64,000 bases of DNA from Isurus oxyrinchus (GCA_026770705.1 JANJGN010000150.1:62001-126000), one strand, 5' to 3'. Positions 4,772 to 59,015 are shown, counted from the first letter of the stretch. Notes: generated by a model not told the origin, from the letters alone. Numbers and translations: made by a program.

Positions 4772-5149
4772 TTGGACTGTCACAAGATTGGAAAGGCAAC
4801 ACTCCACGAGAGGTGACAGCGCAGGAAGGTTCGTGTGTACAGATTCCATGTCATTACAGTTACTCATCACATTTGGTAAAGAAAACACATGTCGGAATCT
4901 GGTATATGAGGAGGTACATACAGAACAAATGGTCTAAATGGTCTATAGCCTTTCACTCCAAGGATCACAGTCACGAGTTACCACGGTTCCACCATCGGAC
5001 CCGGCTGTCTGGAGACCTGAAAGATGGTGACTGTTCCCTGATTATAAACAACATCACACGGGAAGATGCAGGACCTTATTTTTTCAGAATAGAATTTGAC
5101 AATGGTCCGAGCCATAACTATTACCCTGTAACCCAGCTTCACGTTTCTG
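4772..5149 (+). CDS. Gene A exon: Siglec-type V-set Ig domain (VGLSQDW...YFFRIEF...QLHVS)
   Basis: ccccag acceptor and gtaagt donor, phase 1-1. Siglec cysteine pattern EGSCVQIPC / DCSLII. F-strand essential Arg in YFFRIE (cf. CD33 YFFRME). Confidence 0.92.
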
Positions 5150-5876
5150 GTAAGTGCTGTGTTATAATTACTCAACAATTCACATCCAACACTCAATGGG
5201 AAATAACACAAACTGTGACGTTTACATATTAACACAAAACACAGCTTATTATAACACACTGACTGATTCTCAATATCCTGGTGATAGCTTCCAGTTCAGT
5301 CCTAAAGCAACATCTAATACTCACTTTAATATCATTGATTAAATGTATTGACTGTGTCCATCAATGTTATCAGGTTATCCACTCCCATCGATCTCTCTAA
5401 TCCTGTCTCGAAGTCTGACATAGCGACAGAAGAAAGATTCACATTTCTATAGCACCTTTCACCACCTCAGAACGTACCAAATCACTTCACAGCCAATGAG
5501 CTGATTCCTGAATTGTATTTACTGTTGTAATGTGAGAAACACAGCAGCCAATTTGCACAGAGCAATCTCCCACAAATTGCAAAGTAATAAATGGCCCAGA
5601 TCGCTGAGTGAATGATGGGGTAGTGCACTCCGAACTCTGGTCTGCTCCTCCACCCTCACCCACTATTATCAGTTCAAGTGTCTCGGAGTGAACATGTATT
5701 AAGCTGAGAGACAGAAACACCAAAGTCTCAAAGCAGGAAATTCTCTCCTGATCGTTGTAACCTCTCAGATCTGATATCATCCTGTAAAAGTGCTTTTTCT
5801 TGTGGGACTGTGGTTTCTATTTGAACTGATGCTTCACGTTATATTTCTCTAAAAGGATCCATTCTCTGTCTGTTAG

Positions 5877-6173
5877 ATTTCACAGATAAACCCACGATAT
5901 TCCCTGCTGAAATTATTGCAGGAAAGCCTGTGGATGTAAGCTGCACCTTCAACACAACGTGCAATGGAACAGCAGCACCTGTCTTAACCTGGGACTCTCC
6001 CACTGACGTACCTGGATCAGTCTCAAACACTGTAACTCAGCATGGTGTCACTCTGACCTATACTTCTGTTCTGACCCTGATCCCATCACTCAAACACCAC
6101 GGACACACTCTCAGCTGCAGAGTGAGATATCCATCTGTTTCATCGGAGCGGACCCTCGTACTAACTGTGCAAG
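5877..6173 (+). CDS. Gene A exon: first C2-set domain (DFTDKP...CTFNTTC...LSCRV...LTVQ)
   Basis: ttag/gtaagt, 297 nt, phase 1-1. The extra BC-loop Cys is typical of Siglec domain 2. Confidence 0.92.
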
Positions 6174-6349
6174 GTAAGTACCGATACCCTTCATTCTACA
6201 TTCGCTGGAATAGTATAAAATGTGCACAGCAAGCTCCCACACACTGCACTTTGTTTACCAACAGACCATTGGTCTTTAACTGGTAAAAAGTGACCCCTGA
6301 CAGGCAGTACATCCTTACTACTGACTCTCCGACAGTACATCATGGACTC

Positions 6350-7620
6350 ATAGACTCCTAGACAGAAGGAGGCCATTTAGTCCATCATGTCCATGCTGGT
6401 TCATTCTGTCCTTCAGAATTCTTACTAGTAACTTCCCCACCACCGAGGTTAGACTGACTGGCCTGTAATTTCCTGATCTATCCCTTCCTCCTTTTTTTAA
6501 TAATGGGACAACATCAGCCATCCTCCAGTCCTCTGGCACCTCACCTGTGGCCAGAGAGGATTTGAAAATTACTGCCAGGGCCCCTGATATCTCTTCCCTT
6601 TCCTCCCTCAACAGCTTTGGATTCATCTCATCCGGGCTTGTGGATTTATCCACTTTTCAGGCCGCTAAACCCACTAGTACCTCCTCTCTCTGTGTTAATT
6701 ACCTCTCATATTTCACAGTCCTCCACCCTGATGTTATACCTGCATCATCCTTTTCCATTGTGAAGACTGATGCAAAGTATTCATTGAGGACTGTACCCAC
6801 GTCTTCCAGGTCCACACACACATTACCTCGATGGTCCCTAATCAGCCCCACTCTTTCCCGAGTTATTCTCCTGCTCTTTACATATTTAAAAAACCCCTCT
6901 GGGTTTTGCTTTATTCTACTCACCAGTGCTTTCTCATGCACTCTCTTATCTTTCCTAATGTCCTTTTTCAGTTCCCCTCTGCACTATTTATACTCCTCTA
7001 GGGACTCTGCTGTATTGAGCCCTCAGTATCTGCCATAAGCTTCTTTTTTTTCTCAGTCCTAACCTTTATGTTCCTTGTCTTCCAGGGTTCTCCAGACTTG
7101 GTCTCCCTCTTTGTCTTTACAGGAAGATATCTGCTCTGTACTCTCGCTATTCCCTCCTTGAATGCCTCCCACTGCTCTGACACAGTTTTATCTGCAAAGA
7201 GCTTCTCCCAGTCCACTTGGGCCAAATCATATCTCATCTTAGTAAAATTAGCCTTTCCCCAGTTTAGAATTTTTATTCCCAGCACAAACTTATCCTTCTC
7301 CATAACTGTCCTAAATCCAATTGAGTTACAGTCACCATCTCCCCTACTGATACGCTTTCCAACTTCCCCGGCGCTTTTCCATATATTAGGTCCAGAACTG
7401 TCCCCTCCCTTGTTGAGCTTTCTATGCACAGACTAAAAATCTTCTCCTGGATGCAACTTCAGAATTTTTCTCCCTCCCTACCTTGCTCACTAAAGCTGTC
7501 CCAGTTAATATTTGGGTAGTTAAAATCCCTGAGTATTACTGCTTTATTATTCTTACACATCTCTGAAATGTGATCACATGTTGGATTGTCCATCTCTCCC
7601 TGACTGTTTGTTGGTTTTAT
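6350..7620 (-). mobile_element. CR1 LINE ORF2 fragment
   Basis: ORF fragments VPEDWRMADVVPLLKKGGRDRSGNYRPVSLTS and LNWGKANF. Confidence 0.85.
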
Positions 7621-7691
7621 ATCTTGAGTCTATGAGTTCACTGGTTGAGTAAACTCGAATTGCATTCCTTCATATACACTTGTTAGTTGAT

Positions 7692-7895
7692 AAAAACAAA
7701 AAAACTGCGGATGCTGGAAATCCAAAACAAAAACAGAATTACCTGGAAAAACTCAGCAGGTCTGGCAGCATCGGCGGAGAAGAAAAGTGTTGACGGTTCG
7801 AGTCCTCATGACCTCAGTTCTGTCGAAGGGTCATGAGGACTCGAAACATCAACTCTTTTCTTCTCCCCCGATGCTGCCAGACCTGTTGAGTTATT
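7692..7895. mobile_element. Penelope-type short element forming a ~64-bp-arm palindrome
   Basis: aactcagcaggtctggcagcatcgg...gacc pairs with ggtc...ccgatgctgccagacctgttgagtt. Related copies at 16113-16245 and 48815-48950. Confidence 0.6.
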
Positions 7896-56938: not shown

Positions 56939-57610
56939 GTAAGTCTGAAGATTTAACTTGATTTTAATATAAACATTTGCTTCAATGTTCTTTCCTGAAG
57001 TCGGTGATTGTTTCCCTTGGGATCAGCACCAGGTCCCTCTCTGTAAGTGATCCCTGTGTCCACTCTGATCCGGAGAGAACCTTTCATTGTCCTGTATCCA
57101 GGTAAACGATCACGAGACTCAGAGATTCCTCACTCTGCACGATTACTCCTGGATAAATATTTGCTTCAATGTTCTTTCCTTAAGTCGGTGATTGTTTCCC
57201 TTGTGTTAAGCGCCAGATGCCTCTCCGTAACTGGTCTCTTTATCCGTTATGATCCAGAGAGTGGTTTTCATTGCCCGTTATCCAGATGAATAATAATCAG
57301 TTGCTGTGATCTGGAAGGTGCTGCCTGAAAGAGCGGTGGAAGCAGATTCAATAGGAACTTTCAAAAGGGGAATTGGATAAATACTTGAAGGGGGAAAATT
57401 TGAAGGGCTACGGGGGGAAGAGCAGGGATGGAGGGGTCAGGCAAAATTGAATCACATGACACACTTCCATTATAGTGATATCACGCTGATATCCCTTATT
57501 GCAACTGGAGACAGTCCAGTCGTTGGTGTAAGGTTACACTGGGCTCTGTGTCTGTGCTGCACTGACTCTCTGCTATATGATAACCACAGTGTGATATTGT
57601 GTTATTGCAG

Positions 57611-57692
57611 GAGAAAGACAACGATGGAGGAGAGAGTTTCAGGGACCAGTGAGGTTGCATTGAGCCCCAGTCCATTCTCTGTGAAGCACCAG
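57611..57692 (+). CDS. Gene D cytoplasmic exon 1 (RKTTMEERVSGTSEVALSPSPFSVKHQ)
   Basis: ttgcag/gtacag, phase 2-0. Confidence 0.85.
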
Positions 57693-57907
57693 GTACAGGA
57701 GCTGTTTACACTAACTCCAAAGCTTCAATATCAGTGTGTAGACAACACGTGTCCCAGATTCCCAACCCAGTTACCCACAGATATCTACCTGTGGAGTCAG
57801 CAATGGCTCAGTAGGTAATATTGACTTTCGGTCCCTTCCCCCTCTCTCCCTCCATCACTCGCTCTTTGTCCAGAGACCTGAACACAATAATCATAAGGCA
57901 CCTGATG

Positions 57908-58465
57908 TCACTACTGAGGGAGTGCTGCACTGTCGGAGGGTAGGTACTGAGGGAGTGGTGCACTGTCGGAGTGTCAGTACTGAGGCAGTGCTGCACTGTC
58001 GGAGGGTCATTACTGAGGGAGTGCTGAACTGTCGGAGGGTAGGTACTGAGGGAGTGCTGCACTGTCGGAGTGTCAGTACTGAGGCAGTGCTGCACTGTCG
58101 GAGGGTCAGTACTGAGGGAGTGCTGCACTGTCGGAGGGTCAGTGCTGAGGGAGTGCTGCACTGTCGGAGGGTAGGTACTGAGGGAGTGCTGCACTGTCGG
58201 AGGGTAGGTACTGAGGGAGTGTTGCACTGTCGGAGTGTCAGTACTGAGGCAGTGCTGCACTGTCGGAGGGTCAGTAGTGAGGGAGTGCTGCACTGTCGGA
58301 GGGTCAGTACTGAGGGAGCGCTGCACTGTTGGAGTGTCAGTACTGAGGGAGTGCTGCACTGTGCGAGGGTCAGTACTGAGGGGGTGCTGCACTGTCGAAT
58401 AGTCAATATTCAAGTGGTGCTGCCTTCTCGAAGAGGCAGTTGTGAGGGAGTGCCGCACTGTCAGA
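57908..58465 (-). repeat. 33-bp minisatellite, reverse orientation
   Basis: Same intron position as 37055-37668. Confidence 0.92.
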
Positions 58466-58766
58466 AGCCAGCACTGAGAGTACATTGTAGTGTTCAAGGT
58501 GCTGTCTTTCAGAACAGTTGTATAATGCTGACCATGTTTACCCTCTCAGGTGGTCGTATAAGATCCCACGGCCACATTTCCAACACTATAGCAGTGACAC
58601 CCTTCAACAAAAATTTCTTCATTTGCGTGAGGTTCTTTGGATGTCTTTGAAAAAAAGGGTTAAACGCTCTGAGCCACGACTGACACTAGCGAGGCTGCAC
58701 AATAATTTAACCCTATCAGTGCCAGTAAATGATGTGAGGATGTCTTCTGTTTCCATTTCTCTGTAG

Positions 58767-59015
58767 GGTAAACAGAACGTGCTGATTACTGAGCCCCGGA
58801 ACACAACCAGAGACACAACTAGTGAGGGGGAGACCCCAGCTCCCCGGGATCTCTCTGAAGGTCCAGTGGGAGGCGATGTTGGACATGGGAACCCCGACAA
58901 TACCGACGAGCTTCTCTACGCCAACATCAACTTTTCAAAGCTGCCCGGCGGTGACAGGACTGTGCACAGGAGCGAGGACACGGAATACACACAGATCAGG
59001 TTCCAGAAAAACTGA
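58767..59015 (+). CDS. Gene D terminal exon with ITIM (LLYANI) and ITSM (TEYTQI)
   Basis: ctgtag acceptor. ELLYANINF...TEYTQI parallels CD33 ELHYASLNF...TEYSEV. TGA stop. Confidence 0.9.
   Translation, partial: GKQNVLITEPRNTTRDTTSEGETPAPRDLSEGPVGGDVGHGNPDNTDELLYANINFSKLPGGDRTVHRSEDTEYTQIRFQKN

Follow-up and report, generated by a model that had tools for sequence, protein, structure and literature searches.

The window analyzed here, a stretch of 64,000 nucleotides (nt) from Isurus oxyrinchus (GCA_026770705.1 JANJGN010000150.1:62001-126000), probably holds part of an extensive Siglec family, tandemly duplicated and restricted to elasmobranchs, which is modular in its construction and subject to birth-and-death evolution. 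The sequence features, exon structure, splicing and clade of this family are demonstrated by the data presented below. A motif scan located six Siglec-type V exons, all on the plus strand, with the CVQIPC and CSLII signatures each occurring six times, and the copies of the other exons were sorted by blastn using the exons of gene A, the first in the window, as queries against the window. Besides members of this family, the window contains only repeats. A preliminary description had read the stretch as four paralogous genes with six V-set domains from a cartilaginous fish. The six V exons and the host stand, the proteins closest to the window exons being those of Carcharodon carcharias (great white shark) and Cetorhinus maximus (basking shark) at 90-96%, none of them identical, whereas the four tidy genes resolve into one complete gene (D), two genes without a leader (A and C) and a stump (B).

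According to Pfam, the V exon matches V-set (2e-13) and Ig_CD22 (8e-10), the exon for the first C2 domain (C2a) matches C2-set_2, and the exon for the stalk domain (C2b) matches Ig_3/I-set. When the V domain of gene A was compared with solved structures using phmmer, the best matches were sialoadhesin, MAG, Siglec-5 and CD33 at 1e-11 to 1e-13, which is far above chance. In the V alignment, numbered by the gene A exon, the residues W6, C21, C26, C87 and R105 are invariant in all six V exons, in agreement with the earlier claim that every V domain carries the Siglec cysteines and the F-strand arginine. W6 aligns with the A-strand tryptophan of sialoadhesin (Trp2, a ligand contact), and C21, C26 and C87, which are predicted to form the corresponding bonds, align with the sialoadhesin cysteines (GSCLLIPC ... 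CNLLL). R105, found as FRIE or FRIK, aligns with the arginine that holds the carboxylate of sialic acid (FRFE in sialoadhesin, FRG in MAG and FRME in CD33). The C2a exons of genes A, B and D show the three-cysteine pattern SCTFNTTCNG...LSCRV, as in domain 2 of Siglecs, where the middle cysteine pairs with the extra cysteine of the V-set domain in an interdomain bond, and gene C is without the last of these cysteines. The sequence features that define a Siglec are present, and the V domains would be expected to bind sialic acid.

Gene D is complete. Its 13 exons form one frame of 1064 amino acids with two V domains, six stalk exons and a cytoplasmic tail that carries both an immunoreceptor tyrosine-based inhibitory motif (ITIM) and an immunoreceptor tyrosine-based switch motif (ITSM):

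43415-43454, plus strand: leader exon, MSGKSYFLLSLLQ plus one base, found by the leader search
47050-47418, plus strand: first V exon (V1), placed by its borders
49084-49452, plus strand: second V exon (V2), with an extra cysteine and the sequence FRIKFD, placed by its borders and the V alignment
49824-50120, plus strand: C2a exon, placed by its borders
50635-50916, 51638-51919, 52807-53088, 53894-54175, 54974-55255 and 55747-56028, plus strand: six intact C2b stalk exons of 282 nt, placed by their borders
56842-56938, plus strand: neutral membrane exon, placed by matches to the proteins of other sharks
57611-57692, plus strand: cytoplasmic exon 1, placed by borders and frame
58767-59015, plus strand: last exon with LLYANI (ITIM), TEYTQI (ITSM) and the stop, confirmed by the frame check

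In the tail, the tyrosines of the ITIM and the distal ITSM lie 23 residues apart. The V2 domain has a lysine in place of glutamate two residues past the key arginine (FRIKFD), and both second V domains in the window, those of genes C and D, have an extra cysteine (YPLCLENQ and YPSCLENQ) where the first V domains have a histidine (YPSHLENQ).

AG and GT dinucleotides border the exons throughout, and the immunoglobulin (Ig) exons are of phase 1/1. The membrane exon of genes C and D leads from phase 1 to phase 2, and the exon that follows brings back phase 0. Exons were searched for singly, the inhibitory membrane exon being located with the predicted proteins of other sharks, and joined models, made from the window coordinates, served only to check the frame and to build the V-C2a tree. 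The window holds four C2a exons (at 5877, 16497, 32151 and 49824), while the C2b exon is found once in gene A, as a 3' half in gene B and six times in gene D. The membrane exon with an arginine is present in a single copy, and the neutral membrane exon and the two cytoplasmic exons in two copies each. A leader search by blastn-short and motif scan detected only two leader exons in the window, at 14371-14410 and 43415-43454, upstream of genes B and D, and no leader of their own for gene A or gene C.

Gene A carries an end of the activating type:

4772-5149, plus strand: V-set exon of phase 1/1 with a long, tryptophan-rich C-C' loop, supported by AG/GT borders, Pfam (V-set and Ig_CD22), structure matches to sialoadhesin and MAG, and the joint 5149/5877
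5877-6173, plus strand: C2a exon (C2-set) with three cysteines, supported by Pfam C2-set_2 at 7.5e-9 and the joints 6173/8603 and 6173/10589
8603-8884, plus strand: C2b stalk exon, I-set-like, supported by Pfam and by contig X6 record 22, which joins 8883 to 10589
10589-10728, plus strand: last exon with an arginine-bearing membrane span (ILGIRAV), a tail of 12 amino acids and the stop, the only copy in the window

The last exon reads ...ILHVILILGIRAVIFLVAVVITIAGVCVW ERQTVKGSRQTV stop. Its product, SGGEILHVILILGIRAVIFLVAVVITIAGVCVWERQTVKGSRQTV followed by the stop, is a hydrophobic span with one arginine and a 12-residue tail without tyrosine, as had been described before for this gene, and it is 91-96% identical to the ends of the great white shark proteins P0187, P0169 and P0173. 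An arginine in the span together with a short, tyrosine-free tail is the usual sign of a receptor that borrows an adaptor with an ITAM (immunoreceptor tyrosine-based activation motif). This feature of activating receptors, a membrane span with a basic residue followed by a short, motif-free tail, is joined to both C2a and C2b in transcript contigs.

The contigs come from four runs (four studies, two organisms given as codes), whose status as RNA was guessed, and were aligned to 4745-10740 at a likeness of at least 90%. GT..AG joints fall exactly at the predicted borders 5149/5877 (X1, X5, X7), 6173/8603 (X1), 6173/10589 (X1, X5, X7) and 8883/10589 (X6, a contig of 674 nt). Because such joints occur solely in spliced RNA, the family is transcribed and spliced as predicted, and the expectation that transcripts should show these junctions (V-C2a, C2a-C2b, C2a-membrane and C2b-membrane) was borne out at the level of the family. 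Activating-type transcripts exist both with and without the C2b stalk exon. The activating end is reached from C2a directly or by way of the C2b exon, and these alternative joints to 10589 indicate that the length of the stalk seems to vary, either by exon skipping or among copies. Some contigs are 97-99% identical to the gene A exons, such as X7 record 24, which differs at 3 of 258 letters, and X7 record 30, which differs at 4 of 148.

An exhaustive HMMER search with the first V domain of gene D returned 1176 relatives at E ≤0.001, 30 of which were found at E ≤1e-30. The named top matches are RefSeq predictions from sharks, rays and skates, which go by the labels Siglec 12, Siglec 13, CD33-like or MAG-like. 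Among the close lamniform relatives are proteins with the same arginine-bearing end and one with five stalk domains and an inhibitory tail, and both signalling ends are found in predicted proteins of the great white shark, the basking shark and catsharks. The family is already annotated automatically in RefSeq for many sharks and rays, and the window adds a further member. No paper describing an elasmobranch Siglec family was found in the literature searched; the whale shark genome paper merely lists Siglecs among the gene families of jawed vertebrates.

For the phylogeny, 63 V-C2a units aligned over 224 columns were placed in a maximum-likelihood tree, which comprised the 4 window units, 27 elasmobranch proteins, ray-finned fish, sauropsids and 9 mammalian CD33-related Siglecs. 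Two matches labelled Homo sapiens were excluded, orthologues of CD22, Siglec-1 and Siglec-15 were not included, and the single reference outside the CD33-related group was the lizard MAG P0347, which scores 733 bits with mouse MAG. All 31 elasmobranch units form one clade with a support of 100/99, which means that the expansion is lineage-specific. Within this clade, the branches among lamniform proteins are very short, and activating proteins are interspersed with inhibitory ones. One-to-one orthology with MAG, CD22 or Siglec-1 was rejected on account of the many copies per species and the single elasmobranch clade; an origin on the MAG side stays compatible with the data.

Could the family then have expanded in elasmobranchs from a MAG-like ancestor, or from a common ancestor of MAG and the CD33-related Siglecs, with the ITIM/ITSM tail as an ancestral Siglec feature? 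We regard this as a serious possibility, although we lean slightly away from it. In the free tree, a split supported at 100/95 places the elasmobranch clade with the CD33-related sequences of amniotes (mammals and turtle), and leaves the MAG-like proteins of ray-finned fish and two lizard proteins, one of them the MAG P0347, on the other side. When the elasmobranchs were constrained to join true MAG (P0347), the tree was 2.6 log units better, and the approximately unbiased (AU) test accepted it with p 0.53. The domain scores are similarly divided. The V domain of gene A scores highest with sialoadhesin and MAG, and C2a and C2b score best, among Siglecs, with MAG domains; the two-domain unit scores highest with CD33, as seen for the V-C2 unit of a 91%-identical great white relative against structures (CD33 97 bits, MAG 90, Siglec-5 86, Siglec-8 82, Siglec-15 45 and CD22 43). 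The nearest relatives outside the elasmobranchs are genes of gar, bowfin, sturgeon and teleosts labelled 'MAG-like', 'Siglec 14' or 'CD22-like', and fish MAG has been reported to possess ITIMs (PMC7226832). On the other hand, the family resembles CD33-related Siglecs in how far apart its ITIM and ITSM lie and in its variable architecture of one to few domains. 'CD33-related' is therefore used here for architecture and motifs only, since a grouping with MAG gives an equally good tree. Of the earlier proposal of an independently expanded, or very ancient, CD33-related-like family, the lineage-specific expansion stands at 100/99, and CD33-related descent is one of two placements that fit about equally well (AU p 0.53).

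The second unit with an inhibitory end is gene C, whose V1 exon lies at the end of a duplicated block:

1-5206, plus strand: first copy of a segmental duplication of 5.2 kb, the second copy being 22615-27829 (95% identical); it ends 57 nt past the V exon of gene A
27386-27772, plus strand: V1 exon of gene C, at the end of the block that duplicates 1-5206, placed by its borders and self-comparison
31414-31779, plus strand: V2 exon with an extra cysteine (...YPLCLENQ), placed by its borders and the V alignment
32151-32441, plus strand: C2a exon with a 6-nt in-frame deletion that takes out Ser-Cys, placed by blastn and borders
32602-33475, no strand: N gaps at 32602-32754 and 32841-33475, separated by 86 nt of CA-rich sequence, within the intron from C2a to the membrane exon
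34755-34851, plus strand: neutral membrane exon (RDSSKWTVGLYTAGIMLSVFLAGIFIFICVRK), placed by matches to the proteins of other sharks
35959-36040, plus strand: cytoplasmic exon 1, placed by borders and frame
37817-38065, plus strand: last exon with LLYANP (non-ITIM), TEYAQI (ITSM-like) and the stop, confirmed by the frame check

The Ser-Cys missing from the C2a exon includes the F-strand cysteine that is kept in genes A, B and D, and its loss is either a real defect or an assembly error. In the tail of gene C only the distal TEYAQI fits a consensus, and LLYANP stands in the place of the ITIM. The inhibitory tails of the window thus come in two subtypes, ...LLYANINFSKLP... with an ITIM (58767-59015) and ...LLYANPQVFRV... 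without one (37817-38065). Since proteins of the great white and the basking shark show each of the two subtypes again, the NPQVFRV tail is a conserved variant rather than a local defect. The preliminary description, in which genes C and D both end in a neutral membrane span with ITIM/ITSM-type tails, is right for gene D (LLYANI, TEYTQI); gene C has the neutral span and an ITSM-like motif and no ITIM. The V exon of gene A and the V1 exon of gene C occupy like positions, each at the end of the 5.2-kb block, and by analogy each may lie downstream of a B-like stump.

Gene B itself is preserved in part:

14371-14410, plus strand: leader exon upstream of gene B, MIGKSYFLLSLLQ plus one base, found by the leader search
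15273-15638, plus strand: V exon, one codon shorter (CSLII-NIRRE), placed by its borders and the V alignment
16497-16793, plus strand: C2a exon, placed by blastn and borders
17117-17269, plus strand: C2b remnant, 3' half only and without the acceptor, placed by blastn and homology to gene A

The codon missing from the V exon is lost just after the E-strand cysteine. The homology of gene B to gene A aligns 17117-18598 with 8732-10258 and breaks off at 18598, which corresponds to a position 330 nt before the arginine-bearing membrane exon of gene A; a search within the window detected no membrane exon for gene B downstream of 18598. Since its 3' part is homologous to that of gene A, the sequence suggests that gene B was formerly of the activating type. 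It is followed by a long interspersed nuclear element (LINE) with reverse transcriptase and then by the block 22615-27829.

Several observations weigh against reading the window as part of a working family. Only one of the four units, gene D, is demonstrably whole: the window holds no leader for gene A or gene C, gaps interrupt gene C and one of its structural cysteines is missing, and gene B is broken. Splicing is shown for the family and for close copies and not strictly for these loci, because the threshold was 90% and many copies are nearly identical. Over the whole V exon dN/dS is 0.4-1.0, so positive selection on the V domain is not shown. Finally, the AlphaFold model of the gene A V domain, calculated from the six-row alignment, has a mean confidence (pLDDT) of 65, and although its top Foldseek match is sialoadhesin, the r.m.s.d. 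of about 10 Å means that this weak model adds little to the sequence evidence.

These observations raise the possibility that the window is the graveyard edge of a cluster, in which mostly decaying copies remain, only gene D is functional, if any, and the contigs stem from intact copies elsewhere. The truncation of gene B, the missing C2a cysteine and canonical ITIM of gene C, the absence of a leader for genes A and C in the window, the introns filled with LINE fragments and minisatellites, and the acceptance of contigs from 90% likeness would all agree with it. We nevertheless find such decay unlikely, given that all exons of genes A, C and D are open with intact splice sites, that some contigs are 97-99% identical to gene A exons, and that the tail variant of gene C is conserved in two other lamniform species.

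The preliminary description had gone further and suggested, from V type and flanking DNA, that A pairs with C and B with D. On that reading these would be true activating/inhibitory pairs, with binding domains that gene conversion keeps alike as in primate Siglec-5/14 and Siglec-11/16. We consider this quite improbable. The flanking DNA does pair in this manner, with a likeness of 95% over 5.2 kb for A and C and of 89-93% for B and D, and the V exon of gene B is 96.7% identical in DNA to V1 of gene D, above the 93% and 85% found in their flanks. However, genes A and C differ most in their V exons, the very part in which partners should agree best (86% in DNA and 74% in protein, with a dS of 0.21), although the kilobase upstream is 95.5% identical (a divergence of about 5%); this is the reverse of what is seen in Siglec-5/14. 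Their differences are concentrated at 4860-4990 (C-C' loop) and 5100-5200 (F-G region), and gene C has two V domains compared to one in gene A. More generally, the V domain of gene A shares 74-82% protein identity with the other five, and near-identical partner domains are not found for it. As for B and D, the homology of the 3' part of gene B to that of gene A would speak for a formerly activating partner, but gene B has lost the membrane exon, and because it is without a signalling end the two cannot now act as an activating/inhibitory pair.

The evidence for gene conversion is a hint from very small numbers. The C2a exons are 97-98% identical while the introns downstream lose homology within about 130 nt, a likeness that is common to all genes and not confined to the proposed pairs. 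Across the C2 exons, synonymous differences amount to 1-7% compared to an intron divergence of 7-16%, from counts of just 0-6.5 per pair, too small for showing conversion; conversion of the C2 exons is suggested at most. The overall pattern fits a modular family with diversification of the binding loops and perhaps some homogenization of exons, and birth and death with swappable ends fits better than fixed one-to-one pairs.

Four N gaps lie within the genes, all of them in introns and bordered by a 33-nt minisatellite or by CA-rich repeats. The two in gene D (50935-51156 and 51927-52129) start 19 and 8 nt past the intact donors of stalk exons 1 and 2. The gaps cut no visible exon and no reading frame relies on them; as all four are intronic, the exon counts are minima. 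The order of elements in gene C (minisatellite, gap, CA repeat) parallels that in gene D (minisatellite, C2b exon, CA repeat), so a C2b exon may be hidden in the gap region of gene C, and further stalk exons may be hidden in the gaps. A fifth N gap, 62779-62931, lies outside the genes described here.

The minisatellite, with a unit near CCTCAGTACTGACCCTCTGACAGTGCAGCACTC, occurs five times (8162-8470, 12074-13561, 37056-37668, 50239-50504 and 57907-58462): in the intron before the first C2b exon of genes A and D, between genes A and B, and inverted in the last intron of genes C and D. It adjoins one of the assembly gaps and could serve as a substrate in unequal recombination. Long CA-rich microsatellites are found at 33476-34300, 51157-51600, 52130-52450, 53090-53470 and 54180-54600, where they flank gaps. 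Each C2b stalk exon of gene D is trailed by such a microsatellite, which on translation gives His/Thr-rich pseudo-open reading frames. LINE fragments with reverse-transcriptase matches are located in introns and between genes (6351-7432 on the minus strand, 19733-22320 and 59979-60638 on the plus strand), one of them between the gene B stump and the duplicated block ahead of gene C. An open reading frame at 10861-11490 on the minus strand had no match in Pfam.

How might such receptors be built and work? The proposed receptor is an array of phase-1 exon cassettes: a leader, one or two V-set exons, C2a, none to six or more C2b exons, and an end of one or the other of two interchangeable kinds. 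What we infer from the sequence are the ligand, the adaptor, the recruitment of phosphatases and the cell type. The V domains would bind sialylated glycans through the F-strand arginine, and the variable C-C' and F-G regions would determine their specificity. The almost tail-less, arginine-bearing end would couple to an ITAM adaptor of the DAP12 or FcR-gamma type and thereby activate the cell, whereas the neutral membrane span with its ITIM/ITSM tail would recruit phosphatases of the SHP type and inhibit it. Birth and death would proceed by segmental duplication, deletion (as in gene B), LINE insertion and exon amplification (as in the stalk of gene D), a turnover that may repeatedly create activating and inhibitory receptors with similar ectodomains and break some of them.

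In mammals, the main brake that self-recognition puts on innate immunity is formed by Siglecs; their activating counterparts are viewed as a response to pathogens mimicking sialic acid. If sharks and rays possess an expanded and expressed family with both kinds of ends, the arms-race layout would have to be either very old or prone to evolve repeatedly, and comparative immunologists would gain a second, independent test system. The significance is tempered by the fact that these genes have already been labelled as Siglecs by annotation pipelines, that two placements of their lineage fit about equally well and that the proposed function rests on sequence. The RefSeq elasmobranch proteins named 'Siglec 12/13', 'CD33-like' and 'MAG-like' (P0187, P0173, P0011 and P0247) belong to the same family; they are 90-96% identical to the window exons and share their leader, arginine-bearing end and inhibitory tails, and their names derive from best-match labelling.

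In fish, four Siglecs are counted as regular, conserved members, and the CD33-related (inhibitory) kind is stated to be absent (PMC7226832). Should the shark family and the amniote CD33-related Siglecs prove to be sisters, their branch would go back to the first jawed vertebrates, in contradiction to such an absence. The ray-finned genes that are its nearest relatives outside the elasmobranchs (gar 'MAG-like', bowfin 'Siglec 14', arowana 'Siglec 6' and teleost 'MAG-like') share 35-46% V identity with it according to HMMER, and the ray-finned Siglec-like genes form separate clades in the tree. MAG resembles the shark family in that V, C2a and C2b all score well against its domains, and the tree is compatible with a sister relation. 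In contrast, MAG is a single conserved gene with five domains, while the shark family has many copies, a variable architecture and activating members.

Other features are shared with the CD33-related Siglecs, which combine an ITIM with a distal TEY-type motif, as in the shark inhibitory tail, and whose member CD33 is the best structure for the V-C2 unit. The tandem V-V head of genes C and D is also found in mammalian Siglec-12. For the six near-identical stalk exons and the extra cysteine specific to V2, we know of no mammalian counterpart.

The closest parallel in layout may be that of primate Siglec-5/14 and Siglec-11/16, which are likewise tandem genes encoding a V-set domain with the essential arginine followed by C2 domains. 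In these pairs one partner has a tail with an ITIM and an ITIM-like motif or ITSM, and the other a basic membrane span and a short tail that signals via DAP12, similar to the two shark ends. Because the shark family arose within the elasmobranchs, its activating/inhibitory pairing is convergent with that of primates. The two systems differ in that domains 1 and 2 of the primate partners are near-identical through gene conversion (PMC4042635), while the shark activating V domain has only 74-82% protein identity to the inhibitory ones. Primate activating partners have often been lost by deletion or fusion (PMC4042635), and gene B seems to have been lost by deletion as well. We suggest, tentatively and as something we would not yet count on, that cartilaginous fish have independently evolved a Siglec system of very large size on the same logic as the primate CD33-related Siglecs, with sialic-acid sensors that have swappable activating and inhibitory ends, fast-changing binding loops and the repeated loss of activating partners.

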